A DNA stretch of 64,000 nt. It comes from Anthoceros angustus. Taxonomy: Eukaryota > Plantae > Anthocerotophyta. The DNA lies in contig MU008205.1 in NCBI GenBank assembly GCA_010909165.1, forward strand, positions 124,001-188,000, in the 5' to 3' direction. Positions 8,339 through 26,661 of this stretch are shown here, one piece after another (the stretch's first letter is position 1; every line of letters begins with the position of its first letter). The translations under genes were made by a program, and so were the position numbers. Below the pieces are notes generated by a model, which made no database searches, was not told where the DNA came from, and saw nothing but the letters and a program-made list of their open reading frames with translations.

Positions 8339-8700
8339 TGTCTAGGGACACCATGAGGTCCACATTTACCCTCAATGTCGTTGTAGGCCTAGGATTCTCT
8401 CCCAAGGGAATGGTTTGTGCCAAGGGACGCTAACTTCTATCACTACTGACCTTTTCCTAAGTTGGGACTTACCTGCTATCACCTCTCCTATCTATCTACT
8501 CAACTACTACTGTCACTCGACTCGCCTAACTACCGCAGATCGCCTTCCACGACCACCGCTCCCGAGCTACTACCCCGGTGGCTCTCACCACTACTGGGTA
8601 GTGATTACAACTACCGTGGTGGGTCCCACACTAAAAACCCTAGCACCTTCCCTCTGGCGCACGGTGCCGCGGATTCCTGTCACGGGCGGCTTCCTCCTCT
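8339..8700. repeat. End of an unclassified element, inverted homologue of 24180-24393
   Basis: The reverse complement of ~8350-8420 (cacaaaccattcccttgggagagaatcctaggcctacaacgacattgagggtaaatgtgg) matches 24312-24372 (cacaaaaccattcccttgggatcgaatcctaggactataacgacatagagggtaaatgtgg). Weaker similarity continues inward. Confidence 0.7.
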
Positions 8701-9211: not shown

Positions 9212-9259
9212 CACTACTAGGGAGAGGGGTGTTTTACAAAACCCCTTTTGCAAATCCCC

Positions 9260-10095
9260 CAATCTTTACAACGTCTAAACACCTCCGTTGTAAATTGATT
9301 TGAGTTTCGCTGATGTGGCAAGTTTTAAGACTCGGTTTACAACGGGGGTTTCTAGTTGGATGATGTGGCACTCTTTTGGGTGCTCATTTACAACAACGGA
9401 TTGATGACGTGGCTCCACGTTGTAGATTACGTTGTAAAAGCTTTTTCAAAATTTGATCTTTATTTTTCTAAAATCTTTATTAACATCACTAATCACAAAA
9501 ATATGATTGGAAGCCATTTACAACGTGCGACGTGGCTCCCTTGTTGTAGATTACGTTGTAAAAGCCTTTTCTCAAAATTTGTTCTTTATTTCTTCAAAAC
9601 TCTTTGTTATTATTATTAATCACAAAAATATGATTGGAAGCCATTTACAACGCATGCGATGACGTGGCTCCTTGTTGTAGAGATTACGTTGTAAAAGCCT
9701 TTTCTCAAAATTTGTTCTTTATTTCTTCAAAACTCTTTATTATTATTATTAATCACAAAAATATGATTGGAGGCCATTTACAAGCGATTGATGACATGGC
9801 TCCCTTGTTGTAGATTACGTTGTAAAACATTTTTCTCAAAATGTGTTCTTTATTTGTTTAACTCTTTATTATTATTATTAATCACAAAAATATGATAGGA
9901 GGCCATTTACAACGATTGATGACATGGCTCCTTGTTGTAGATTACGTTGTAAAGTAATTTTCTCAAAATGTGTTCTTTATTTTTTAAACTCTTTATTATT
10001 GTTATTAATCACAAAAATATGATAGGAGGCCATTTACGATTGATGACGTGATTCCCTTGTTGTAGATTACGTTGTAAAGCATTTTTCTTCAAAAT
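9260..10095. repeat. CACTA subterminal tandem array, ~6 x ~125 bp
   Basis: Repeated unit aatcacaaaaatatgat.gg.gccatttacaacg..gacgtggctcc.ttgttgtagattacgttgtaaa..ttttctcaaaat. Each unit holds inverted TTTACAACG/CGTTGTAAA motifs. Confidence 0.9.
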
Positions 10096-10379
10096 GTGAG
10101 GCGGGAGGCTATTTTAAATTTGATTGGGGTTATTTTGTGGGGGCATGATGAGCGTCCATTCAAAATGCAGGCGTGCCACTCGGCTCGCACTCCATTAATC
10201 CCGCCCTTACACACCGGCATGGAGAGGGAAAAAGTTGAGAGGGGGCTAGTGCTCTAATACTAGTACGTCACGCTCTTTAGCATTTTCTTTAGTGTTCTTA
10301 TTGTGAGCGGTACCACCTCTATGCCCACAAGCAAGTGCGCCTTGCCCGATGGTACATGTTCGTACATGCTTACCTTCAG

Positions 10380-11310
10380 CCATTGTATGGCCAGCCATTG
10401 TCGCGTTAGGCGCCATTAGGCGTTAATTGGGTGCCATTGTTGGGCGTTGGGCACCATTGTCGCGTTAGGGGCGCCATTGGCGTTAATTGGGCGCCATTAT
10501 TGGGCATTACTTGGCGCCATTGTTAGGCGTTAGTAGGACGCCATTGTTGGGCATTAATAGGCGCCATTGTTGGGCGTTAATTGGGCGCCATTGTTAATTG
10601 GTACCATTGTTGGGTGTTGGGCGCCATTGTTAGGCGTTAATTGGGCGCCATAGTTGGACGTTAAGCGCCATTGTTGGGCGTTAATTAGGCGCCATTGTTG
10701 GGTGTTAGGCGCCATTGTTGGGCGTGCGCCATTGTTGCATTAATTGGGCGCCATTGTTGTTGGGCGTTGGGCATTATTATTAGGCGTTATTTGGGCACCA
10801 TTGTATGGCCAGCCATTGTCGGGCATTGGGCGCCATTGTTGTTGGGCATTAGGCGCCATTATTATTGGGTGTTATTTGGGCACCATTCTATGGCCAGCCA
10901 TCGGGCGTTGGCGCCATTGTTGGGCGTTAATTGGGCGCCATAATTGGGCATTAGGCGCCATTGTTAGGCGTTATTTGGGCGCCATTATTGTTGGGCGTTA
11001 GGCACCATCAAATGGCAAGCCATTGTCGGCGTTAGGCGCCATTGTATGGCAAGCCATTGTGCCATTGTTAGGCGTTATGCGCCATTATTGTTGGGCGTTG
11101 CACCATTGCGCCATTAGGCGCCATTGTATGGCAAGCCATTGTTGCCATAGTTAGGCATTAATTGTTGGGCGTTGGCGCCATTATTGTTGGGCGCCATTGT
11201 TGAATAGTTAGGCATTAATTGCCATTATTGTTGGGCGTTACCATTGAATGACAAGCCATTGTTGGGTGTTAGGCGCCATTGGCCTGGCACCATTGTATAG
11301 CCGATCATAT
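10380..11310. repeat. GGCGCC-rich degenerate satellite (ttgggcgccattg(tt)/gggcgtta), array 1
   Basis: Dozens of imperfect copies of ggcgccattgttgggcgtta(att)g. Confidence 0.95.
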
Positions 11311-11984
11311 TTGTCGGCGCAAGCACGATTAACATTTCATCTTGGAAGGTTGATTATCTTTGTTTATCCAGAGAAAGGCTAGACAAGCTATAGCTTGGCA
11401 TGGTTACTGCTACCATTGGCAAAAGTACCCATGGAAATTGGATCAATGACAAAGGCATTGTAAGGTGTACAAATCAATTGGGAGTATGTTGAAAAGGGAC
11501 TCATAGTACGAGTCCGCCTCATCGTCATGTTCGAGTTCCCACACGTTCGTCTTGGAAATTTGAATCGGTGTATATTAGTAAATAGATTGGGGTTTAGATT
11601 TTGATGGGGAGGTGGCGGTTCGCCTTTTGGGCCATATGAAGTTCTAATGCTTCCATATAGTCTTTTAATCATCTAGTTAGCCTTGGCTAGATTACGGATC
11701 TTCTGTAGTACTCTCACCGGCCGAATTTACTTTGTGATTAAACTTCTCTAGAAAATTCATGCCCTCATTACATTTCTTACTAGCAAAGAGTATAGCATGT
11801 TGAAAGCTCTAGTTCCTCGGAAAATCTGAAGATTACTTCAAGGATAAGTATGTCTTTGCATTGTTGCTTTCTCCGACTACATACTCTTTCCTTTAGGGAA
11901 GTGGCGGGGATAACGAGGAAGAGTTTTGATGGGGGTGGAAGGCAGAGGCAGGTGGGGTATTTTAAATTTGGCATATTGTATTGG

Positions 11985-12560
11985 CGCAATTTTGGGCGTT
12001 AATTGAGCGCCATAGTTGAGTCCCATTATTGTTGGGCGTTGGCGCCATTATTGGGCGTTAATTGTGCGTCATAGTTGAGCATTGGGCGCCATTATTGGGC
12101 GCCATAGTTGAGCATTGGGCGCCATTATTGCGTTAATTGGCGCCATAGTTGAGCATTGGGCACCATTGTTGGCGCTATTGTTGCGTTATTTGGGCACCAT
12201 TGTATGGCCAGCCATTGTCGGGCATTGGGCACCATTGTTGGGCGTTGGGCGTTGGGCGCCGTTGGGCGTTGGACGCCATTGTTAGGCGTTATTTGGGCGC
12301 CACAGTTGGGCGTTAATTGGGCACCATTATTGTTGTGCGTTGGGCGCCATTGTTGGGTGTTAATTGGGCGCCATAGTTGGGCGTTAATTGGGCGCCATTA
12401 TTGTTGGGCGTTGTGCACCGGCATTGTATGGCAAGCCATTCTCGGGCATTGGGCGCCATTGTATGGCAAGCCATTGTCGGCGTTGCGCCATTGTATAGCA
12501 AGACATTGTCAGGTGCTGGGCGCCATTGTATGGCCGGTCATATTTGTCGGGCGCAAGCAC
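11985..12560. repeat. GGCGCC-rich satellite, array 2 (a third, shorter array lies at ~13745-13950)
   Basis: Same motif as array 1, ending in the same attgtatggccggtcatatttgtcgg spacer start. Confidence 0.93.
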
Positions 12561-15152
12561 GGCAGCCAGCATTCACTTGAGCTCGTTTCTTCTAGGAGAT
12601 GCTACCTTTTCCTTGCATAGAGAGCCAACAAGGGATGTTTGATGCGAGGAGGCTACTTGCAATTAGTATTGAATAGATTGGGGCACAAGGGTGATTTTGG
12701 GAGCGGTTTTCACTAAAACAGTTGGGGTTAACGTTTCATCTTGGAAGGTTGATTATCTTTGTTTGTCGAAAGGCTAGACAAGCTATAGCTTGGCATAGTT
12801 ACATCTTGCTACCATTGGCAAAAGTACTCAAGGAAATTAGATCAAGTTGACAAAGGCATTTTAAGGTGCACAAATCAATTGGGAGTATGTTCAAAAGGGC
12901 TCATAGTTCGAGTCCGCCTCATCGTATGCTCGTTCGAGTTCCCATATGTTCGGGCTTCACAGGTATTTGAATGAGCGTATATTAGTGAATAGATTGGGGA
13001 TTTAGATTTTGATGGGGAGGTGGTGGTTCCGCCTTTTGTGGGCCATATGAAATTCTAATGCCTTCATATAGTTTGCTAATCGTCTAGTTAGCCTTGGTCG
13101 ATTCTGGATCTGCAGTAGTCACTCGTCTCACCGGTCGAATTTACTGATTAAACTTCTCTAGGGAATTCATGCTCTCATTACATTTCTTACTAACAAGGGA
13201 GCATGTGCCGAAAGCTCAAGGCCGGTCCTTGAATATCTACGGAGATTACTTCAAGGATAAGTATGTCTTTGCATTGTTTCCTTGTCCCGTCTATGTACCC
13301 TTTCCTTTCATAAGGCCATTTCGAGCTCGGGAAAGGATGTTTGCTATGAGGAAGGCTAATATTTGCTTGGGTTTGGTTTGGTTTGGTTTGACTATCTTTG
13401 TCTATCCAAAGAAAATTTGGACAAGTAGGAATAGTCGAGGATGTACATGCTACTATCGTTGGCAAAAGTACGGAGGAAACTAGATCAACACTTTAATGAC
13501 AAAGGCATTACGAATGATGAACTAGAAGTATATATGTTCGATTATAAGGGGCTCATGGTTCGAGTCCGCACCATCGTAAAAATAATTCACACATTATAAG
13601 CAAGCCTTGTATATGTTATAATTAAGACCAAACTCAAACCCCAAGCATTGTATCACATTTTGAAATTTCAAAACCTTCTAACACCGCATACATGACGTAT
13701 CGCTCATTCTCAATTCCTCATCGATGTCGTAAGATGATATCTATCGTAGCTCATTATTGTTGTGCGTTAGGCGCCATTGTTGGGTGTTAATTGGGCGCCA
13801 TTATTGTTGCGCCATTATTGTTGGGCGTTGTGCGGCTGGCAAGCCATTCTCGGGCATTAGGCGCCATTGTAGCCATTGTCGGCGTTAGGCGCCATTGTAT
13901 AGCAAGACATTGTCGGTCTTTGGCGCCATTGTATGGCCGGTCATATTTGTCGGGAAACGCAACGCAGATTCTCTTGCACAATATTGGAGCTCGTTTCTTC
14001 TAGGAGATGCTACCTTTTCCTTGCATAGAGAGCCAACAAGGGATGTTTGATGCGAGGAGGCTACTTGCAATTAGTATTGAATAGATTGGGGCACAAGGGT
14101 GATTTTGGGAGCGGTTTTCACTAAAACAGTTGGGGTTAACGTTTCATCTTGGAAGGTTGATTATCTTTGTTTGTCGAGAGAAAGGCTAGAGCTTGGCATA
14201 GTTATCTTGCTACCATTGGCAAAAGTACTCAAGGAAATTAGATGTTGATGACAAAGGCATTTTAAGGTGCACAAATCAATTGGGAGTATGTTCAAAAGGG
14301 GCTCATAGTTCGAGTCCGCCTCATCGATATCGTTCGAGTTCCCATATGTTCGGGCTTCACAGGTATTTGAATGAGCGTATATTAGTGAATAGATTGGGGA
14401 TTTAGATTTTGATGGGGAGGTGGTGGTTCCGCCTTTTGTGGGCCATATGAAATTCTAATGCCTTCATATAGTTTGCTAATCGTCTAGTTAGCCTTGGTCG
14501 GTCGATCTGCGAGTCACTCGTCTCACCGGTCGAATTTGCCGTGATTAAACTTCTCTAGAATTCATGCTCTCATTACATTTCTTACTAACAAGGGAGCATG
14601 TGCCGAAAGCTCAAGGCCATCCTTGAATATCTACGGATTACTTCAAGGATAAGTATGTCTTTGCATTGTTTCCTTGTCCCACGTCTATGTACCCTTTCCT
14701 TTCATAAGGCCATTTCGAAGCTCGGGAAAGGATGTTTGCTATGAGGAAGGCTAATATTTGCTTGGGTTTGGTTTGGTTTGGTTTGACTATCTTTGTTTCC
14801 AAAGAAAATTTGGACAAGTGGGAATAGTCGAGGATGTACATGCTACTATCGTTGGCAAAAGTACTCAAGGAAATTAGATCAACACTTTAATGACAAAGGC
14901 ATTAGAATGAAATGAACTAGAAGTATATATGTTCGATTATAAGGGGCTCATGGTTCGAGTCCGCACCATCGTAAAAATAATTCACACATTATAAGCAAGC
15001 CTTGTATATGTTATAATTAAGACCAAACTCAAACCCCAAGCATTGTATCACATTTTGAAATTTCAAAACCTTCTAACACCGCATACATGACGTATCGCTC
15101 ATTCTCAATTCCTCATCGATGTATCGTAAGATGATATCTATCGTAGCTCATT
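12527..15152. repeat. Tandem duplication, 2 x ~1.4 kb (plus a deleted third copy at ~11290-11985)
   Basis: attgtatggccggtcatatttgtcgg occurs at ~12527 and ~13928. Both copies end in gatatctatcgtagctcatt (~13757, ~15152). Confidence 0.93.
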
Positions 15153-15924
15153 CATTTATTGTCCTCATCTTTTTATTGTCATCCTCGTCTTCGCTTTCGT
15201 CCTCATCTTTGCTTTCATCCTCATCTTCCTTGTCATCCTCGTCTTTGCTTTCATCCTCATCTTCCTTGTCATCCTCATCTTTTCTTTCATCCTCATCTTT
15301 GCTTTCATCCTCATCTTCCTTATCATCCTCATCTTTACTTTCCTCTTCATCTTCCCTTTCGTCCACATCTTCCTCTTCTTCCTTGTTGTCCTCATCTTCC
15401 TCTTCTTCCTTGTTGGCGTCCTCGTCTTGATTCCATGTCCTTCTCATTTTCGCTACCCTCCTCATCTTCCGTAGTCTCTTCATCGATATCCTCTCTACGC
15501 ATCCTCGTCTTCCTCATCATCCGCATCTTCCTTGTCATCCTCATCATCACTATCACCATCATCTTCCCACATCGTCTTCATCTTCCATGTCATCTTCATC
15601 TTCGACTACATGTCTTTCATCAATATCCTCATCTTCTATATCGTCTTCGATTACATGTCTTCCATCAATATCTTCATCTTCCATGTCATCTTCAACAACG
15701 TATATTCCATCGATATCCTCATCTTCCATTTCATCGTTATCTTCCACTACATATCTAGTTCCATCGATATGCTCATGATCATCTTCCACTTCGTGTCTTC
15801 TATCGATATCCTCGTCTTCCATGTCATCCTTGTATTCCAGCACTTCATGGACATGTCTTCCATCAAAATCGTCACATTCTACTACACGTCTTCCACGGCG
15901 GTTGTACCAACTACAAGTTTCCAA
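15148..15924 (-). repeat. Acidic D/E-rich coding minisatellite, probably the C-terminal tail of the CACTA transposase
   Basis: ORFs 15559-15924 (DDMEDEDIDGRHV.E, ~15-aa units) and 15148-15483 (DEDDKEDEDESK, 36-nt units). One added A at ~15905 joins the DUF4216-like WKLVVGT to NRRGRRVVECDD. Confidence 0.7.
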
Positions 15925-18730
15925 GATTTTTGGGTATTTTGCATAAAAGCTCGCTCCAATTTCGGAGATACCATAACGAATGGTTCGTCTTTCAGCTTTT
16001 CTTGAGATAACGTTTTGTTTGGATTCAACATGACCATACCGGTGGAGTCATCTCTTTTCTCTCTGTCCTATCCTCATTCCGGTGTGGAACCACTTTACCT
16101 TGAGCACATTTATATTTGTAGTAACTCCAAAATCAACTTCATAAATCCTCTCCTTTGTTCCAACATACACTGCAATGGGTTCAGGTCACCTGTTTTCAAT
16201 ACATAGAAATGTATATAGTTGTGTTATGATGCTATCACAAGTTTGTTTCCAGCATCAAGATCCGGTCAATATGATGTCCATATGCCCACATCATGCTATA
16301 AGAACGCAGATTCAAATGGCCCTCTTACAAGTGCAACCACCTCCTTTCCATATATTTCTAATGCGTTCCCCTTTTAGATCACTTCCACCTCATCGATTAA
16401 CCACTCCACAAAGGCGATCTTGATTTCATTGTCATCATATACTTCTTTCCATTGCTTAGTCCACTCAGTTCTCTAATATCACTTTCCTCACTTGACTCCT
16501 TTCCACATCTGACAGATGCTTTGTCTTTCCATATCCTTGTAACAACTCCCCACTTTGAGTAACATCTTCTTTCATTGTCCAAATCCGTGGAGCTGCATTA
16601 TGGATATTTCCAAAGAATTCTGAAGAGTAAAACATTGTCTCTTGTGCTAGATATCCTAAAGCCATGCTTCCTTCCGGTCGAGCTTTTTGTCGTACAAGGT
16701 TCTTTAGCACTTTCATATGTCGTTCAAGAAAATACATCCAACGATAGCGTGTGGGCCCACATAATTCAACCTCCTGCACCAGATGAATAACAGCATGGAC
16801 CTGGCTTGTCAGAAATGTTGTAGGAAACTCTCTCTCAAAATGCACATCACCTCCAATTTTGACCTTCATAGCGAATCTCATCCTTCACAATTTCTTTTGC
16901 GGTAAGCCAACGCATTAGTTCTGCGAGATCACATATAGCCTTATGCACATGTGGATGTATCAACCCTCTCAAGGCAATTGGCCATATGTCACATAACAAA
17001 TGATGATGATCATGGGACTTGAGCTGAAATTGTCTCGTGTCCCTTTCTTAAAACAACGTTTCAAGTTGGACCCATACCAGTGGGCATACGGATGTTGCAA
17101 ACCCTTCTCTTCAATTTCTCCAATGCTTTAGGATAAGAATAGTTAGTGCCATGTCCAAGAACCCAAGGTGCTGGAGTCGATATGCACACGTTCCCGCGTT
17201 TCCTTCATCAAGCATCATCTTGTCTCTCTTCCTTTTCCTTGATTGCCTAGGCCTAGGCCCATACTTGGCTTGGGCTTGGCCATGCCATGGCCCTAGCCCT
17301 AGCCCTACCCTTGGGCTTGGGTTTAGGTTGGGGCATCCTTGGGCCACCATTCGCTTGGTATTTGATAGTTCGAGATCTCTCACTGCAAGGGTTTCAAACT
17401 CCCCACAAATGTGCCTCATAATTTGTTCACTAACGTTCTTTCCAATGTGCATGATATCAAAAATTGAAGGTTCATTGCATTGACACCCCAATGGGCTACA
17501 AAGTTCTAAAAGCCTTATAATATATTTGAAGGATAAAAACTCTCTCTTCGATAAGCATGTCTGCTTAGGTTCTCTTCGCTCGGAAGAACACTTGCAACGA
17601 CGTCCATCAAATGTGTCCTTCTCTTCCACTCTAAACTTGTTCCTCGCAAGTGCATTCTAGAATTTTTATCATCGTCATTTTTTAGTGTGTGGTGATCTGC
17701 GTGCTTCAAGTTTATCCCAACATTTTGGACATGCCCGCTTCCCTTTGGTTTGAAGCTTTGAAGTGAGTATATCACGGGTAGTGCATAGTCCACATCAATA
17801 AGGCTTTTAATCTAAATTGTTTTTGAGCATTCCCATCTCCGAGAAATATCGTCCACTATTATGCCTTCTTCCCACAATATCTTCAACTCTTCAATAAGCG
17901 GTCGAAATAAATGTCGCATTTTTCACTTGCTTCGGACCAGAATAATCATTGATAATAATATATGTCCATTGTATGGACATCCATGGAAACAAGTTATAAT
18001 TGACAAGTAGCCAAATGGAATATTGAGAACTCGTGTCCAAAGCGGGTTAATCCCATCGGTAGCCAAATCGAATATTGCGGCGTCTCCATAGCAAACTGAA
18101 ATGTTTGGTCCACATATTCCCACGCTTGGGCATCGATGGTATTCGCATGATCCCATCACTAGACTTAAATGTTGCATGCCAAGACATCATACTAGCTAGC
18201 TTCTTGCACCTAAACATTTGCTTCAACCTAGGAATTAATGGAAATAACGCAACACCTTCACGGTATTTTTTGCCCTTTGTATCCGTTCTATCTATTTGCC
18301 CCACACTTGCAGACATTAGCGGGGCTGTAGCTCGCCATGAAATAATAGGAGTCATTTGGACAAGCATGTATAGATTTATAAGACAGCCAAATCCTTCAAT
18401 AGTTTTCTTATCTCGGCTCTATTCTTGGGCAACTTGTTGTCGTAAGTCCTAAGCTCCTATTAATTCCAACATAGTATTCAGATGCATCCGACAACAATGC
18501 CTCCTCACGGCGTTAAGCAATAATAAGGTAAATGAGCAAATTTGTTTTGGCTCCGGTCCATAAAGATGTGGTTGCATGCATTCTCTTCAATTCCTTAGGC
18601 AAAGAATTTACCTCTTCCTCGGTCAAATCGGCAATACCTACTCCACCAAGTGCCTCCACCATCTCTATAGCCACTTGTTCATGAGGGTGAATGTATTCGT
18701 TTTCTTCCTCATGCATGGATTCACCATGAA
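15880..18730 (-). mobile_element. CACTA TnpD-type transposase, copy 1 (Transposase_21 / DUF4218 / DUF4216-like), frameshifted
   Basis: Motifs in order: HGE; LPKNRAE.RKLLKDL..YKSIHACPND; FPLIPRLKQMF..MSWH..DGIMR; LATDGINP; LSMII.GPKQ; DIMHI.KNV; QLKSHDHH; EREFPTTFLTSQVHAVIHLVQEVELCGPTRYRWMYFLERHMKVLKNLVRQKARPEGSMALGY; VLKVKWF..EPFV. Confidence 0.93.
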
Positions 18731-21700
18731 TTTTTTCCCCTTCAACCTAGAATTTTTGAGCAAACATACATAACATGTTATGAAAATAAAATAAAATAAA
18801 ATAAAATAAAATATACAATACTTTATTATAGGCTAGCTTGACCATGATCTCTAAAGGATATCAATCACCTAGATAAACTATGTTCAAACTTCAAACACAG
18901 TAAGGAAAAACTAATATTCACATCATTAGACATGTCATGCAAATACTACTCTAAATCTACATCCTCTTTCATCAACTTTGCCTTCATCTTTTCCCATTCC
19001 CTTTTGCATATTCTGCGGTATCTACATACTCCTCGCATCCGCACTTGTCTTCATGCATTAACTTTGCCTTCATCTTCTTCCACTCTCTTGCACATACTCT
19101 TTAGTATGTGCATACTCTAACCCTCCCACCTATTGGTTTGAATGTTTTTTGTTTTCTTATGTTTTGTGTGATGGAGTGCTTAGGAAATGTCAAGGCAAGG
19201 CCTTTTATACTAAAAATGGTCCTTGGCCCATGACAATATTACTTTTACAAATAATTAGTCCTTGGGCCTCGAACACCTTGAATATCGAGCCAGCTAGAAG
19301 GTCCTTGGACCTTGGGATTTTAGGAATAAAAATTGTCTATATAAGGTGGGGATCCTTCATTCGGCAGGGCCCGGAACAAGTGGAGGCAGCGGCACCTAGA
19401 AGTTCGGGAAGCTAGCGGAGAGGTATAAGCGGAGAGAGGTGAGGCTAGGGCCGGGGTCAAGGAGGCAAAGCGAAGAAGGGTGAGCAACGGCCACGATGCT
19501 GAAACACCGTTGGGAAGCCACCACGGTGGTGGCACCACGTCGCAGCACCACGGTGGTGGAGCCGGCCATCGTCGCGGAAGAAGGACCCAAGGTGGGGAAG
19601 CCACCGTCGAGGCCAGGGGAGGATGCAACTCCCTCGAGTTCGAGCGGCCCGGGATTGTCCACGAGGCCGGGCATACCCTTCACAGGTTGTGCTCGAAATG
19701 AGCAAGGAGGCTAGAGCATGGGCGAAGGAGCGCAGTTTGCTGTCAGCGATGAGGAGCGAGAAGCGTGCGGGGCGAGCAGACGGGCGCCTCTAGGAGGAGT
19801 GAAGGGACCTCGGATAGCGTGAGGTGGAGATATTAAGGGAGGATCTTTGGATCGGGCGTGGTAGGAGGCGGGGAACACCCATGGGCCGCGGGGCTAGGCG
19901 GCCAGTGAGGCGCTGATTTTAGAGGAGGCATCATAGGTCGAGGCTTTCACTTGGATTAGAGGATAAGGTGCTAGGAAGCTTGTGAATTTGTAGATACCAA
20001 TTGGTAGGCGCGGGGGTTAGCCATCTTTAAACCTGCACATGTGGATGTATCAACCCTCTCAAGGCAATTGGCCATATGTCACATAACAAATGATGATGAT
20101 CATGGGACTTGAGGTGATTGTCTCTGTCCCTTTCTTAAAACAACGTTTCAAGTTGGACCCATACCCAGTGGGCATACGGATGTTGCAAACCCTTCTCTTC
20201 AATTTCTCCAATGCTTTAGGATAAGAATAGTTAGTGCCATGTCCAAGAACCCAAGGTCTTTGGAGTCCGTATATGCGTTCGTTTCCTTCATCAATGCATC
20301 ATCTTGTCCTCTCTTCCTTTTCCTTGATTGCCTAGGCCCATACTTGGCTTGGGCTTGGCATATATTATGGCCTAGCCTAGCCCTACCCTTGGGCTTGGGT
20401 TTAGGTTGGGGCCGTCCTTGGGCCACCATTCTGCTTGGTATTTGATAGTTCGAGATCTCTCGACTACAAGGGTTTCAAACTCCCCACAAATGTGCCTCAT
20501 AATTTGTTCACTAACGTTCTTTCCAATGTGCATGATATCAAACAAGTGTCTAATTAGCAACACAGCCATCATATGCATATTGATGATAATTGTAAGCATT
20601 CAAACTACAAAGTTCTAAAAGCATAATCATTTTATAATATATTAAAGTGAAGGATAAAAACGGGATCGACACCTACCTCCCAATATGGAAGCTCCCAAAA
20701 TTGAAGGTTCATTGCTTGTGACACCCCAAGGCCTAACGATGCCTTAGTTGCGGTTTTCCGTAAAAACTCTCTCTTACGATATCATGGGTTCATCGCTCGG
20801 AAGAACACTTTGCGTCCATCAAATGTGTCCTTCTCTTCCACTCTAAACTGTGTTCCTCGGCAAGTGCATTCTAGAATTTTTATCATCGTCATTTTTTAGT
20901 GTGTGGTGATCTGCGTCAAGTTTATCCCAACATTTTGGACATGCCCGCTTCCCTTTGGTTTGAAGCTTTGAAGTGACCGTATATCACGGTAGTAGTGGTA
21001 GTCCACATCAATAAGGCTTTTAATCTAAATTGTTTTGAGCATTCCCATCTCCAGAAATATCGTCCACTATTATGCCTTCTTCCCACAATATCTTCAACTC
21101 TTCAATAAGCGGTCGGAAATAAATGTGCATTTTTCACTTGCTTGGACCAGAATAATCATTGATAATAATATATGTCCATTGCGTATGGACATCCATGGAA
21201 GTTATAATTGACAAGTAGCCAAATGGAATATTGAGAACTCGTGTCCAAACGGGTTAATCCCATCGTGCAAGCCCAAATCGAATATTGCGTCTCCATAGCA
21301 AACTCGAAATGTTTGGTCCACATATTCCCACGCTGATGGTATTCGCATGATCCCATCACTAGACTTAAATGTTGCATGCCAAGACATCATACTAGCTAGC
21401 TTCTTGCACCTAAACATTTGCTTCAACCTAGGAATTAATGGGAAATAACGCAACACCTTCACGGTATTTTTTGCCCTTTGTATCCGTTCGTATCTATTTG
21501 CCCCACACTTGCAGCACATTAGCTAGCCATGAAAATAATAGGATCATTTGGACAAGCATGTATAGATTTATAAGAGAGCCAAATCCTTCAATAGTTTTCT
21601 TATCTCGGCTCTATTCTTGGGCAACTTGTTGTCATGAGAGTCCTAAGCTCCTATTAATTCCAACATAGTATTCACGGATGCATCCGACCAACAATGCCTC

Positions 21701-23241
21701 CTCGGGCGTTAAGCAATAATAAGGTAAATGACAGCAAATTTGTTTTGGCTCCGGTCCATAAAGATGTGGTTGCGTATGCATTCTCTTCAATTCCTTAGGC
21801 AAAGAATTTACCTCTTCCTCATCAAGTCGGCAATACACTCCACCAAGTGCCTCCACCATCTCTATAGCCACTTGTTCATGAGGGTGAATGTATTCGTTTT
21901 CTTCCTCATGCATGGATTCACCATGAATTTTTCCCCTTCAACCTAGAATTTTTGAGCAAACATACATAACATGTTATGAAAATAAAATAAAATAAAATAA
22001 AATAAAATAAAATAAAATAAAATAAAATAAAATAATACTTTATTATAGGCTAGCTTGACCATGATCTCTAAAGGATATCAATCACCTAGATAAACTATGT
22101 TCAAACTTCAAACACGGAAGGAAAAACTAATATTCACATCATTCACATGTCATGCAAATACTACTCTAAATCTACATCCTCTTTCATCAACTTTGCCTTC
22201 ATCTTTTCCCATTCCTTTTGCATATTCGGTATCTACATACTCCTCGCATCCGCACTTGTCTTCATGCATTAACTTTGCCTTCATCTTCTTCCACTCTCTT
22301 TGCACATACTCTTTAGTATGTGCCACATGTACACTAACCCTCCCACGACTATTGGTTTGAATGTTTTTTGTTTTCTTATGTTTTGTGTGATGGAGTGCTT
22401 AGGAAATGTCCGAGGCAAGGCCTTTTATACTAAAAATGGTCCTTGGCCCATGACAATATTACTTTTACAAATAATTAGTCCTTGGGCCTCGAACACCTTG
22501 AATATCCCGCTAGAAGGTCCTTGGACCTTGGGATTTTAGGAATAAAAATTGTCTATATAAGGTGGGGATCCTTCATTCCAGGGGCCCAAGAGTGGAGAGC
22601 TGCACCTCTGGAGAAGTTCAGAAGCTAGCGGAGAGGTATAAGCGGAGAGAGGTGAGGCTAGGGCCGGTCAAGGGAGGCGAGGCAAACAAGAAGGTGAAAC
22701 AGCCACATCGACCACCGTTGGGGAACACCACGGTGGTGGAGCGCCACCGTCATGAGCCCACCACGGTGGTGGAGCCGCCATCGTCGCGGAAGAAGGACCC
22801 AAGGTGGGGAAGCCACCGTCCCTGTGGGAGGATGCAACTCCCTCGATTCGAGCGGCCACGGATTGTCCGGGAGCCGGGCATACCCTTCCCTTGTGCTCGA
22901 GGAAATGAGCAAGGAGGCTAGAGCATGGGAGGAAGGCGCATTTTGGCTGTCCATGATGAGGAGCGAGGAAAGCGTGCAGGCGATGGGCAGAGCCTCCTAG
23001 GAGGAGTGAAGGGACCTCGGATAGCGGGAGTGAGGTGGAGATATTAAGGAGGATCTTGGATCGGGCGTGGTAGGAGGCGAGGGAACACCCATGGGCAGGG
23101 CTAGGCGGCCCAGGCGCATTTTAGAGGAGGCGGCATCATGGTCGAGGCTTTCACTTGGATTAGAGGATAAGGTGCTAGGAAGCTTGTGAATAGATACCGA
23201 ATTGGTAGGCGCGCTTGTGGTAAGTTAGCCATCTTTAAACC
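16944..23241. repeat. Tandem duplication, ~3.09 kb + ~3.21 kb, inside the CACTA element
   Basis: tgcacatgtggatgtatcaaccctctcaagg starts at 16944 and 20034. ttagccatctttaaacc ends at 20033 and ~23241. Both copies contain (AAAAT)n (~18781, ~21978). Confidence 0.95.
20034..21945 (-). mobile_element. CACTA transposase, copy 2 (N-terminal two-thirds only), with a GT-AG intron at ~20553-20674
   Basis: KVLRYFPLIPRLKQMFRCKKLASMMSWH and DGINPFG motifs. The intron gtaggtgtcg...ttgctaattag precedes HLFDIMHI.KNV. Confidence 0.88.
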
Positions 23242-24393
23242 TTTGGAGGTAGGTTAGCCATCTTTAGACCTTGGGAAAGTGAGCTATGGCGCTGACGGAT
23301 GTATAAGAGACCCTTGAGTGTCTCTCTTAGACAATTTCGGTGTGAGCTCCGTGTGTCGAATTTGTGCGCGTGGTTGGTTGGAGACATCCGATCGATGATG
23401 GGCGATTGATTGTCTTGTCCTCTCGTCACAAGAGGGCGGGAGATCCTGGATGGTCGAGAGTGACCAAGCTCGCGTCTGGGGTGACTAGTGGTGAAGGGTG
23501 CTCAATGCATGCAGGAGGAAATTCCCGAGGGGGAGGTGAGATCGCGGGTGTCGAATCGCTGTGGAGCCGACCATTTGTTTTCCTTTCCCAACCCATCTAA
23601 CAGTTGTGTCTAATCCCAAGTGCAGCCCAAGGAGGGTGTGTGGCCCAAGAGTGCATGTGGCGAGGAGGTCTGTGTGGCCCAAGGAGGGGTCATGTGGCCC
23701 AAGAGAGTGTGTGTGGCTGGAGGGTGTGTGGCCCAAGAGAGGTCTGTGGCGAGGAGAGTCTGTGTGGCCCAAGGAGGGTCTGTGTGGCCCAAGAGTCATG
23801 TGGCTGGAGGGTCGGCCCAGAGAGTGCATGAGAGGAGGATCTGTGGGAACATCTTGTGCTGTGCGGTGGTGTGAGGTCGGAAGAAAGGGGTGAGTGAGTC
23901 GTTGTGTGAAGAGGAGTCTAGGAAGTGGTGGCGTGAGTCTGGAAAATGCGGAGCAGGGAAGGTTGGGAATAAATTGTGGGGTCGAGGAAATTAGCGGCGG
24001 TGAGGTGCATGACGTGCGTGGCCATGGTGTGCATCCACGGTGAGCTACGGGTGTGAATCCACATGAGTGTGACTTGGTGTACATGTGAATCATGTGCATA
24101 GGACCATAGCCCTTAGCAGGCGTAGCGAGGAACCGGCGCCAAATAGTCGATCGCGGCAGCGTGCGCCCGGTCAGTGGGTCCCACCGCGGTGGTGAATCCA
24201 CCACAGCGGTGGCCGAACTTACCACGGTCGTGGGTTCGGACCACGTAGTTGATTGATTTGGGTAGGGCGGTTGTAGGAGGACTAAAATCCATAGTTTTTT
24301 TGAACATCTTGACACAAAACCATTCCCTTGGGATCGAATCCTAGGACTATAACGACATAGAGGGTAAATGTGGCCTCTTTGCGTCTTGGATGC
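22400..24393. mobile_element. Unclassified nested element (LTR-like signals) lying in the putative intron between the SET exon and the transposase
   Basis: Has TATATAA at ~22555, a PPT-like GAGGGGGAGG followed by TG at 23537, internal gtgtggcccaag repeats (23630-23825) and a ...GATGCA end at 24393. A partial copy lies at 19185-20033 and an inverted homologue of its end at ~8340-8420. No pol motif was recognised. Confidence 0.45.
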
Positions 24394-24419
24394 AAAACCA
24401 TTCCTATGTGAATACTCAC

Positions 24420-25142
24420 GCTCTGCAGCCTTTTATTCTTGCTATATCATAATTTGGGTCAAACCAATTGTACTCAACAAACAACTCACCTCACTTCAAT
24501 GGTCCGCCGCCCAAGTGCACACCCACATCATGTGGCTATGATGCAATAGCTCATGCCCATCGTCTCTTTCCTCCCATAGGCAGTTACCTTGTTTCGCTAT
24601 TAATGTAACTGCCACATTCCCATATGCCACATGCCCATCCAAGTACACTATAGGTGACGTAAGCTTCGCCTACATCTGTTGAAAGTTAAGGCATATTTTG
24701 AAACTCGCAATCTCACATCTCCAATCTTGTTAAACTCTTGTATACATGGGACCACCAAACACAAATAATGGAACGCCTTTCTTTTGGCTACTAACACTTA
24801 TTTTTCCAAGGCAAACAAACCCAACCCCATTATTGGATTTGTTGCCTCCTTCACTATCCACCAACGACCCCAATATGGAAATGGTTTGTTAATAGGAATG
24901 GCCCCTCCACATTCCCACTCCTTGGGATATACACCTTTGAGAAGACGCTTGTATAACACAACAGCATCATGAGAGTTTGCATCCTCTCCTCTCGTGGTGG
25001 TAAGGGTGTTCAAGGAAAGGTCCACGTGACTCTCCTTTCCACCCAAATTTTTCCTACTTGAGACATGTGTCCACAGTGCGTTCATCATCGGCATCATCGG
25101 GATCAAGAGTGCTAACATGGTCCTCTATAGGAAGTTCGCCAA
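24420..25142 (-). CDS. SET-domain (lysine methyltransferase-like) exon inside the CACTA element, frameshifted as assembled
   Basis: Acceptor tttgtatag at ~25143 and donor gtgagt at 24419. SET motifs in order: IVKEATNPIMGLGLFALEK (GxGLFA); SKYAL; VYLDGHVAYGNVA[G]YINS..NC (needs one frameshift); RTIEV.GELFVEYNW (ELxxDY-like, needs frameshifts). Confidence 0.65.
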
Positions 25143-25713
25143 CTATACAAAAATAATCATCATAAGTACAAACTACATACCATACCGGTTTAACTTACGA
25201 AACCATCATGCATCAATGACACATCATGCACATTTAAAAGGAACATGCATATACTAAATAAATATAAATATATATATTAATATTAAATATGATATACCTT
25301 GAATGTATCACGAAATAGTGGTTAGAAACTCAATATACATCTCAAATACTTAACCAAAGGGGTTAGAAACTCACGTCATATACGCTTGCCGGGTGAGTCT
25401 TCACTTGTGCTGGGTTTCTTCCGAACTTGCGCCTCCCTCCGCCTCGATATATTCCGTATATGCGCTCATGAATACGGACTTGATTCCCCGCATAGTCCTT
25501 TGCCCTTACAGTTTACAATTACATTTCTCAAAAGCATCGAACCATTGGTCGAGCACGCTTGCCACCTCCGGCATGATGAGTCACAAGAGTGTGTCCTTCC
25601 AATGCTGGATTTTGTGGCAAACAACGAAGAGACCAGATTGTGTAATCCTTGCCGCCCACACTAGAAAACCTAGCACACCACATACATATTAGACTAATTA
25701 TATCCACAGACAC

Positions 25714-26075
25714 ACACATAGCACAAATTCCGGAAGAATTGGGAAGAGTTGAGCACTACTTCCATCGAGACTTGACTCCACATAGCACAAATTCCAGAAA
25801 GAATTGGGGAGAATTGTTCTTTGCCATCGAGACTTGGTTGCACATAGCACAAATTCTAGAAAGAATTGGGGAGAATTGTCGCCATCGCATCGAGACTTGG
25901 TTGCACATAGCACAAATTCCGAAAAAATTGGGAAGAATTGAGTACTTCCATCGAGACTTGGCTCCACATAGCACAAATTCCAAAGAATTGGGGAGGATTA
26001 TGCTGCTATTGCCATCGAGACTTGGTTGCACATAGCAATTGGGAAGAATTGGGCTGCTACTCCCATCAAGACTTG
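25714..26075. repeat. Tandem repeat, ~6 x ~63 bp
   Basis: cacatagcacaaattcc..aagaattggg..gaatt....ccatcgagacttgg recurs at ~25715, 25778, 25842, 25904, 25966 and 26028. Confidence 0.9.
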
Positions 26076-26209
26076 GGCAACAGTCGACCTAAGAGGATAA
26101 TGGCCACTCACTCATTCGAGTCCTTTCTCCTTCATGGTGCTTGATTTGGCGAGATAGCGGCAATCCCGATCACCTACTTAGCAATCCGAGCCCGATCCAC
26201 GTGAGGCGA

Positions 26210-26490
26210 TCCCTTGCTTGGCGAGCCCCTCAAATCTGGCCCAATCCACCGAGGCGGTCACAGCAGCCCATGGTGAGCCCCGCTCGAACCCCGCCCAATC
26301 CAGTACAACGAGCTTGATCCCCACACTTGGCGAGCCTCACAGAGCCCAATTCCGCTTGGCGAGCCTCACGGTGAGCCCAATTTCTTTGCTTGGCGAGCCT
26401 CGTGAGCCCTTTCTTGGCGAGCCTCACGGCGAGCCCTTTCTTTGCTTGGCGAGCCTGCGGCGAGCCCAATTTCTTTGCTTGGTGAGCCAC
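26210..26490. repeat. Short degenerate repeat (cttggcgagcc.c / gagcccaatt)
   Basis: At least 7 copies of cttggcgagcc. Confidence 0.8.
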
Positions 26491-26579
26491 ACGCAGTGCA
26501 TATGTGCCTATTACCATGCGGATATGGTATACCATATATGGATACGGTATACCAATACGGTATATTTTTGAGCACATAT

Positions 26580-26661
26580 TACAACGTCAAAATGTGCTTT
26601 ACAACCTCATGCGTTGTAAAGCACGCGTTATGGACGTTGTAAATGACTTATTCTACTAGTG
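26580..26661 (-). mobile_element. CACTA terminus with subterminal motifs
   Basis: attacaacg..tttacaacc..cgttgtaaa..cgttgtaaatgacttattctactagtg. Confidence 0.8.

Follow-up and report, generated by a model that had tools for sequence, protein, structure and literature searches.

A SET-domain exon carried by a lineage of CACTA transposons and its decayed copy in Anthoceros angustus

In the En/Spm element of maize the proteins TnpA and TnpD are made from one transcript by alternative splicing. Here we describe a CACTA (En/Spm-type) DNA transposon of ~17.4 kb in a 64,000-nt stretch of DNA from Anthoceros angustus (Anthocerotophyta; GenBank assembly GCA_010909165.1, contig MU008205.1, positions 124,001 to 188,000 of the forward strand). 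The whole of this stretch is called the window below, and positions are counted from its first letter. The element lies on the minus strand, is a decayed copy and contains the remnant of an exon encoding a SET domain.

A preliminary description of the window, made from its letters alone, had compared the SET stretch to the SETMAR gene of primates. To regard SETMAR as the sole case of SET in transposons would be too strong. SET genes are carried by HarbingerS, by MuDR families of Phytophthora and by Helitrons, to go by the citations of Kojima and Jurka (2014, Repbase Reports) in PMC12730594 and bioRxiv 10.1101/2025.02.11.637652. In the red alga Bostrychia, Plavaka elements (EnSpm/CACTA superfamily) encode PAG2, which consists of a DNA methylase domain (PF01555) plus SET (PF00856) (bioRxiv 10.1101/2025.02.11.637652). 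While transposon-borne SET is thus already known, in the searchable literature we found no description of a CACTA/EnSpm element with SET in land plants or bryophytes, and hence none of a land-plant lineage of TnpD-type CACTA elements whose transposase gene harbours a SET exon.

SET exons in the window and in related elements

Three SET motifs had been reported between the CACTA terminus and the transposase, in the right order and on the same strand. We indeed located them on the minus strand in canonical order: GLGLFA at 24827-24810, YLDG..GNVA at 24645-24610 together with YINS at 24607-24587 and NC at 24585, and GELFVEYNW at 24490-24464. They belong to an exon remnant (24416..25142, minus strand) in which three-frame translation reveals eight conserved blocks (LEHPY, IPINK..GLGLFA, PLFVFGGPMY, SKYALTFN, YLDG..GNVA, YINS, NCLWEE..WVCT and GELFVEYNW). 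The frames of these blocks are, in order, 0, 2, 0, 2, 0, 1, 0 and 1, and therefore at least seven frame changes have occurred; the remnant also has at least one internal stop and ends in its own TGA (24418-24416). An exon that is open between an acceptor at 25143 and a donor at 24419, as had been proposed, does not exist in this copy, with blocks spread over three frames. The longest open stretch in the region measures 106 codons (25118-24801), with a stop directly after GLGLFALEK.

Four pieces of the window gave no match to Pfam at an expectation value (E) of 10 or lower, window pieces gave no match to PDB sequences (phmmer) and the 106-aa piece gave none in a word-index protein search, as pieces this short and this broken do not suffice. 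Comparison with relatives found in public sequence data (loci and proteins numbered with L and P, respectively) was informative at the DNA level. For the N-terminal half, tblastn of the relatives against the window yielded E values between 5e-14 and 5e-10. We also used a purpose-written protein-to-DNA alignment that tolerates frame changes, with significance judged against shuffles. The alignment of the window with the translation of L002 scored 290 versus 36 +/- 4.4 for shuffles (z = 57), with 104 of 231 positions identical, and z was 47 against P0009 and 18 against P0003. A chance match of the motifs is ruled out by the tblastn E values and these z values, and the SET stretch of the window is, by sequence comparison, a true homologue of a SET-family protein. 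The alignments need 5-11 frame changes and at least one stop, which makes the stretch a dead pseudogene.

An exhaustive HMMER search with the 106-aa piece as query returned three short relatives, P0001-P0003 (phmmer E = 6.7e-5 to P0003). P0003 (234 aa) matches the SET domain PF00856 with 29.9 bits versus a cut-off of 22.4, over profile positions 1-104 of 105. A profile built from these three relatives gave 13 family members. SET was matched individually (E <= 0.01) by 6 of 14 scanned members, one of which also matches the PR domain of PRDM2, and in a language-model look-up of P0008 (Atlas features) SET clusters made up 22 of the 30 matches. The PF00856 search proposed in the preliminary description thus gave nothing for the window pieces, while the closest intact relatives lie above the SET threshold or match significantly. 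The fold was approached with two AlphaFold models from shallow alignments (14 and 19 rows), with predicted local distance difference test (pLDDT) values of 47 and 48. For the first model, the top PDB matches in Foldseek were all SET enzymes (SETD8 (SET8), MLL1), at E ~1e-3 and with a target-normalised template modelling score (TMt) of ~0.5. Several observations count against the assignment: the family profile found no SET match among PDB sequences, the best PDB matches of the second model were again SET enzymes only, yet non-significant (E = 0.2-0.7), and models as poor as these lend weak support to a fold.

The motifs GxG (GLGLFA), IDG and GEE(L/V)..Y are conserved across the SET family. A further point on the negative side is that NHS is replaced by INS(S/G/T/V) in every member and by YINS in the window, so that the Asn is kept and the His is absent. 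The His of NHS is required for catalysis in SUV39-type enzymes, and its absence makes catalytic activity uncertain. On these motifs, activity of the family protein seems somewhat less probable than inactivity, and the protein may be a divergent enzyme or a non-catalytic binder.

Members of the SET family sit on short public contigs, two of which, L004 (5668 nt) and L009 (8458 nt), are long enough to provide context. In L004, a zinc-finger exon (..CANCKG..TRHGEAYGHHAPHLPVE) with a phase-0 GT donor is followed by a 156-nt intron ending in AG and by a SET exon ending in TGA, and ~450 nt past SET there are exons homologous to exons 2 and 3 of the window transposase (z = 10-21). L009, which stems from another organism (38% GC), has a CxCxxC..H motif with a phase-0 GTGAGA donor, then a phase-0 acceptor and a 415-codon SET frame ending in TAA, and after SET, on one strand, a phase-0 acceptor with an acidic transposase exon and then Transposase_21, DUF4218 and DUF4216. 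The order of zinc-finger exon, SET exon and TnpD-type transposase on one strand, as predicted from sequence, recurs in these two unrelated contigs.

A zinc-finger exon upstream of SET was also found in L001, L002, L003 and L006, and it joins the SET exon in frame in L004, L006 and L009 at the predicted splice sites. In the window, the remnant of this first exon (CNC..NCKG....RIHERIYGIY; 25375..25529, minus strand) extends across three frames and has a GTGAGT donor after 25375 in phase 0. The AT-rich intron that connects it to the SET exon (25143..25374, minus strand) is homologous to introns of L004 and L006. In L002, precisely the 156 nt of the L004 intron are missing while the frame is kept, which fits a spliced copy or an intron-less variant.

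Two observations on individual relatives may be added. L002 keeps one frame over ~1250 nt, with three in-frame stops (296-298, ~695-713 and 1007-1009), one of which stands opposite a Trp codon of relatives and another opposite a Glu codon (GAG to TAG); the locus could be a pseudogene that is transcribed or was retro-copied. A distant SET-like relative, P0014 (L005, 4525-5364; E = 4e-8 to the family profile, weak Pfam SET match), adjoins a copia-type retroelement gene (rve, RVT_2) on a 14-kb AT-rich metagenome contig, on which no CACTA transposase was seen.

Gene structure, products and selection

The transposase gene of this lineage probably opens with a zinc-finger exon resembling the Transposase-associated domain, followed by a SET exon with its own stop and then by the TnpD exons, and it would encode a separate zinc-finger + SET protein. 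The SET exon would measure ~230-320 codons, and the TnpD exons would specify an acidic part and then Transposase_21, DUF4218 and DUF4216. Since the SET exon lies between the zinc-finger exon and the TnpD exons, it would sit in the first intron of the transposase. The preliminary description had considered, besides a fusion, a separate SET gene carried by the element, and it is this second option that agrees with the same exon order in L004 and L009, with a pN far below pS (see below) and with the closest intact relatives passing the SET threshold.

One primary transcript may give rise to both products, the zinc-finger exon being spliced to SET or, with SET skipped, to the transposase. The zinc-finger exon would then form the Cys/His beginning of the Transposase-associated domain and the ..KIHGE of transposase exon 2 its end. 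In L009 the zinc-finger donor is in phase 0 and is compatible with the acceptor of SET as well as with that of exon 2; in the window, phase 0 is shared by the donor that follows 25375 and by exon 2 (copy A of two, described below). The simplest model is one in which SET, inside the first intron of the transposase gene, would serve as alternative terminal exon. We put forward only tentatively that the zinc-finger exon, as a DNA-recognising head, serves either the transposase body or a SET module, the latter a possible lysine methyltransferase or silent mimic aimed at the ends of the element itself. A common zinc finger would direct the SET protein to the element's own DNA, where it might methylate a lysine of histone or transposase, or might work without catalysis. 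Such a self-targeted protein could write or block chromatin marks on the element's own copies or methylate the transposase, and would occupy the regulatory place that TnpA has in En/Spm. A role of SET in modulating the silencing of the element's own insertions, as the preliminary description had suggested, is pure inference.

It is rather unlikely that zinc finger and SET instead make up a complete gene of two exons that has a promoter and a terminator to itself, and that the transposase starts at its own ATG in exon 2, with neither a shared exon nor alternative splicing. TnpD-type transposases normally open with a Transposase-associated domain and no other copy of it was seen before exon 2, exon 2 of the window begins with ..KIHGE, which is the end of this domain, and the phase-0 donor fits the phase-0 exon-2 acceptors of L009 and of window copy A. 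The two-gene arrangement does agree with the presence of a stop in the SET frame itself, and several findings weigh on its side and against a shared exon. Met codons are present inside exon 2 in the window and in L009, so that the transposase could have a start of its own, and in L004 the exon-2 acceptor is of ambiguous phase. PF13963 (Transposase-associated domain; profile positions 33-64 of 74) is all that the zinc-finger exons of L006 and L001 match, and these matches are below threshold (E = 0.035-0.059). The zinc-finger stretch of the window adds to the doubt about this exon: its spacing is identical by eye, yet the match is non-significant (z ~2).

Far less probable is the SETMAR-like, element-borne fusion in which SET is spliced in frame to the transposase, as had been proposed for the window. 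SET and transposase do lie on the same strand, and the window has a GTGAGT that overlaps with the SET stop and, in front of exon 2, a ttctag acceptor, yet in all six loci inspected (the window, L001, L002, L004, L006 and L008) the SET frame is closed by a stop of its own, at varying positions 5-30 codons past the last motif and after C-terminal tails that are basic and variable. In one subfamily, a conserved DY.WQ..AQL..EP stretch precedes this variable basic tail. Across the window and the five relatives there is no conserved GT donor before the SET stop, and in L004 and L002 a GT is absent at this place. We also rejected the GTGAGT at 24419 as a conserved donor, since it overlaps the TGA of the SET frame itself and is absent in the relatives; it sits a few bases from a foreign insertion, because unrelated repeats start directly after the SET stop.

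The SET exons of L002, L004 and L006 share 69-77% DNA identity, and their introns do not align. By the method of Nei and Gojobori, the proportion of non-synonymous differences (pN) among these exons is 0.16-0.28 versus 0.64-0.70 for synonymous differences (pS), with a ratio of non-synonymous to synonymous substitution rates (dN/dS) of 0.11-0.18; dS is near saturation in this comparison, which weighs on the negative side. This pattern of substitutions indicates that the SET exon is under purifying selection in the diverged copies. Because the arrangement recurs in the window, L004 and L009 and dN/dS is this low, SET is a constant, selected part of the lineage, which answers in the affirmative the question of constancy and purifying selection raised in the preliminary description. 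Contig depth, a weak measure, is ~90-220 for SET and ~100-270 for the transposase part in the DNA run that contains the stretch. An isolated event in which the window copy captured part of a host SET gene (Pack-CACTA style), with subsequent neutral decay, which the heavily broken state of this copy and the general habit of plant CACTA elements to capture gene fragments could suggest, is ruled out by the recurrence of the arrangement in other organisms (L004 and L009) and by pN << pS among the diverged exons, and is also at odds with a SET depth that equals the transposase depth.

Termini, duplication and inserted repeats of the window copy

The CACTA terminus that had been placed at 26661 was found there as CACTAGTAGAATAAG (26661-26647, minus strand) and forms the 5' end of the element as read. 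From this terminus, the order on the minus strand is subterminal motifs and arrays, a short exon-like stretch, the AT-rich intron and the SET stretch. The subterminal region (25715..26635) contains TTTACAACG motifs and two short tandem arrays, one of 31 nt (26326-26493) and one of 62 nt (25715-26037). The opposite terminus is probably CACTACTAGGGAG at 9213 on the plus strand, from which 5.5 subterminal 127-nt repeats with the TTTACAACG motif follow (9213..10095), and this would give the element its size of ~17.4 kb. The CACTA termini are inverted: CACTAGTAGAA stands on the minus strand at 26661 and CACTACTAGGG on the plus strand at 9213, and beyond 9 of 15 bases the inverted repeat is imperfect. 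The TTTACAACG motif clusters at both element ends (9267-10070 and 26580-26635), as in subterminal arrays. A point against the pairing of these ends is that the 3-bp flanks (TCT for the left end, AGC for the right end) do not form a matching target site duplication; the copy is old or its left end is not the original partner.

The window copy is dead: its SET exon is broken, unrelated repeats are inserted directly behind it, and there is a tandem duplication of the transposase's 5' part. Neither the repeat block nor the duplication, nor the zinc-finger exon upstream of SET, was mentioned in the preliminary description. The unrelated repeats occupy ~2 kb between the SET stop and the transposase exon (22340..24400) and were recognised by contig depth and contig ends. 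Depth at 24247-24437 is 3680 versus ~100-250 elsewhere, and contigs diverge at 24387 and 24399. The end of this very-high-copy repeat recurs at 8347-8424 in opposite orientation, just outside the left terminus of the element. The repeat contains a box-B-like motif, GGATTCGATCCC; an origin from a transfer RNA (tRNA) or a short interspersed element was discarded, as ARAGORN found no tRNA.

The transposase is of the TnpD type of CACTA elements, as seen from the exon with DUF4218 (16468..16881, minus strand; Pfam E = 8e-24); a Pfam scan did not detect Transposase_21 in the window fragments. Further upstream in the gene, a 3.1-kb segment is present twice in tandem, as duplicate A (16944..20034), which is continuous with the rest of the transposase, and as duplicate B (20034..23242), which is 89-93% identical to it. 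The segment holds part of the repeat block, the EWEKMKAKLM stretch and 5' exons of the transposase, including exon 2. Because part of the inserted repeat block is included, the insertion of the repeats predates the tandem duplication.

Exon 2 is accordingly present in two copies on the minus strand. Copy A (18558..18746; z = 20.4 versus L004) starts with VEGEKIHGES in phase 0 behind a ttctag acceptor, and copy B (21756..21942; z = 10.7 versus L004) reads ..KIHGESMHEEENEY..LPKELKRMH. The preliminary description had pointed to a ttctag acceptor at ~21945 leading into the HGE of the transposase. The acceptor is present and ends at 21943, but an A-run that is 1 nt shorter in this copy brings a TGA into the HGE frame directly after it. 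What had appeared as the start of the transposase at 21945 is, in view of the tandem duplication, the truncated copy B, and it is copy A at 18746 that is continuous with the transposase. The intron directly upstream of exon 2 contains an (AAAAT)n microsatellite in both duplicates (21979-22035 and ~18780-18830).

Similarly, the EWEKMKAKLM double repeat described as a small exon-like feature does exist (EWKKMKAKLM / EWEKMKAKLM, 22150..22326 on the minus strand, with the pair at 22296-22185 and a duplicate at 18932-19120). Its status as an exon found no support: it has no Pfam match and no tblastx match to any relative locus, and its two units are in different frames.

Past the transposase core, acidic Asp/Glu-rich repeats with units of 18, 45 and 54 nt occupy two reading frames (15148..15924, minus strand); these frames are the acidic tail of the preliminary description. 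Downstream of the transposase and still inside the element, positions 10419-12534 and 12325-15152 are taken up by long arrays, built from a unit of 20-24 nt (GGCGCCATTGTTGGGC..), and by a tandem repeat of 1.4 kb. Inspection of reading frames at 10000-15100, a region not scanned against Pfam, showed no TnpA-like frame of at least 90 aa.

Comparison with known systems

Transposons with their own chromatin enzymes are rare and testify directly to an arms race between element and host silencing. The window copy adds no function to this picture; what it does show is the way in which such copies decay and the constancy of the arrangement in the family. SET lies inside the element termini and is kept across the lineage (window, L004 and L009), as in other transposon-borne SET accessory genes.

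The likeness to SETMAR of primates is limited to SET and transposase being adjacent on one strand. SETMAR is one host gene, in which the reading frame is fused and the mariner immobilised, whereas here the SET frame stops and the element is multi-copy and has termini. With VANC of the VANDAL (MuDR) elements of Arabidopsis the lineage would share an accessory protein thought to act on the chromatin of the element's own copies, which is a functional analogy only; VANC has no SET domain and its anti-silencing effect was shown experimentally, whereas the role proposed here is predicted from sequence.

HarbingerS, the MuDR families of Phytophthora and the Helitrons are alike in being DNA transposons with a SET accessory gene, and differ in belonging to other superfamilies and other hosts (oomycetes and others); they are likened by description only. 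Plavaka is, like the present lineage, an element of the EnSpm superfamily with a SET accessory gene and of a similar giant size (17-19 kb). Plavaka has a transposase lineage of its own, whereas plant TnpD domains are found here, and in its PAG2 the partner of SET is a DNA methylase, whereas SET is here preceded by a zinc-finger exon and lies inside the transposase gene; this likeness, too, is by description only.

A further parallel, in gene organisation, is with En/Spm itself. Both have termini of CACTA type, arrays of subterminal repeats and a transposase of the TnpD type (DUF4218, with Transposase_21 in L009), and both would yield two products, probably with a common first exon and with one frame in the intron of the other, which is predicted from exon phases in the present lineage. 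The difference lies in the second product, which would be a zinc-finger + SET protein here instead of TnpA. If the zinc-finger exon is indeed shared, one DNA-targeting module would serve two effectors, one cutting DNA and one possibly marking chromatin.

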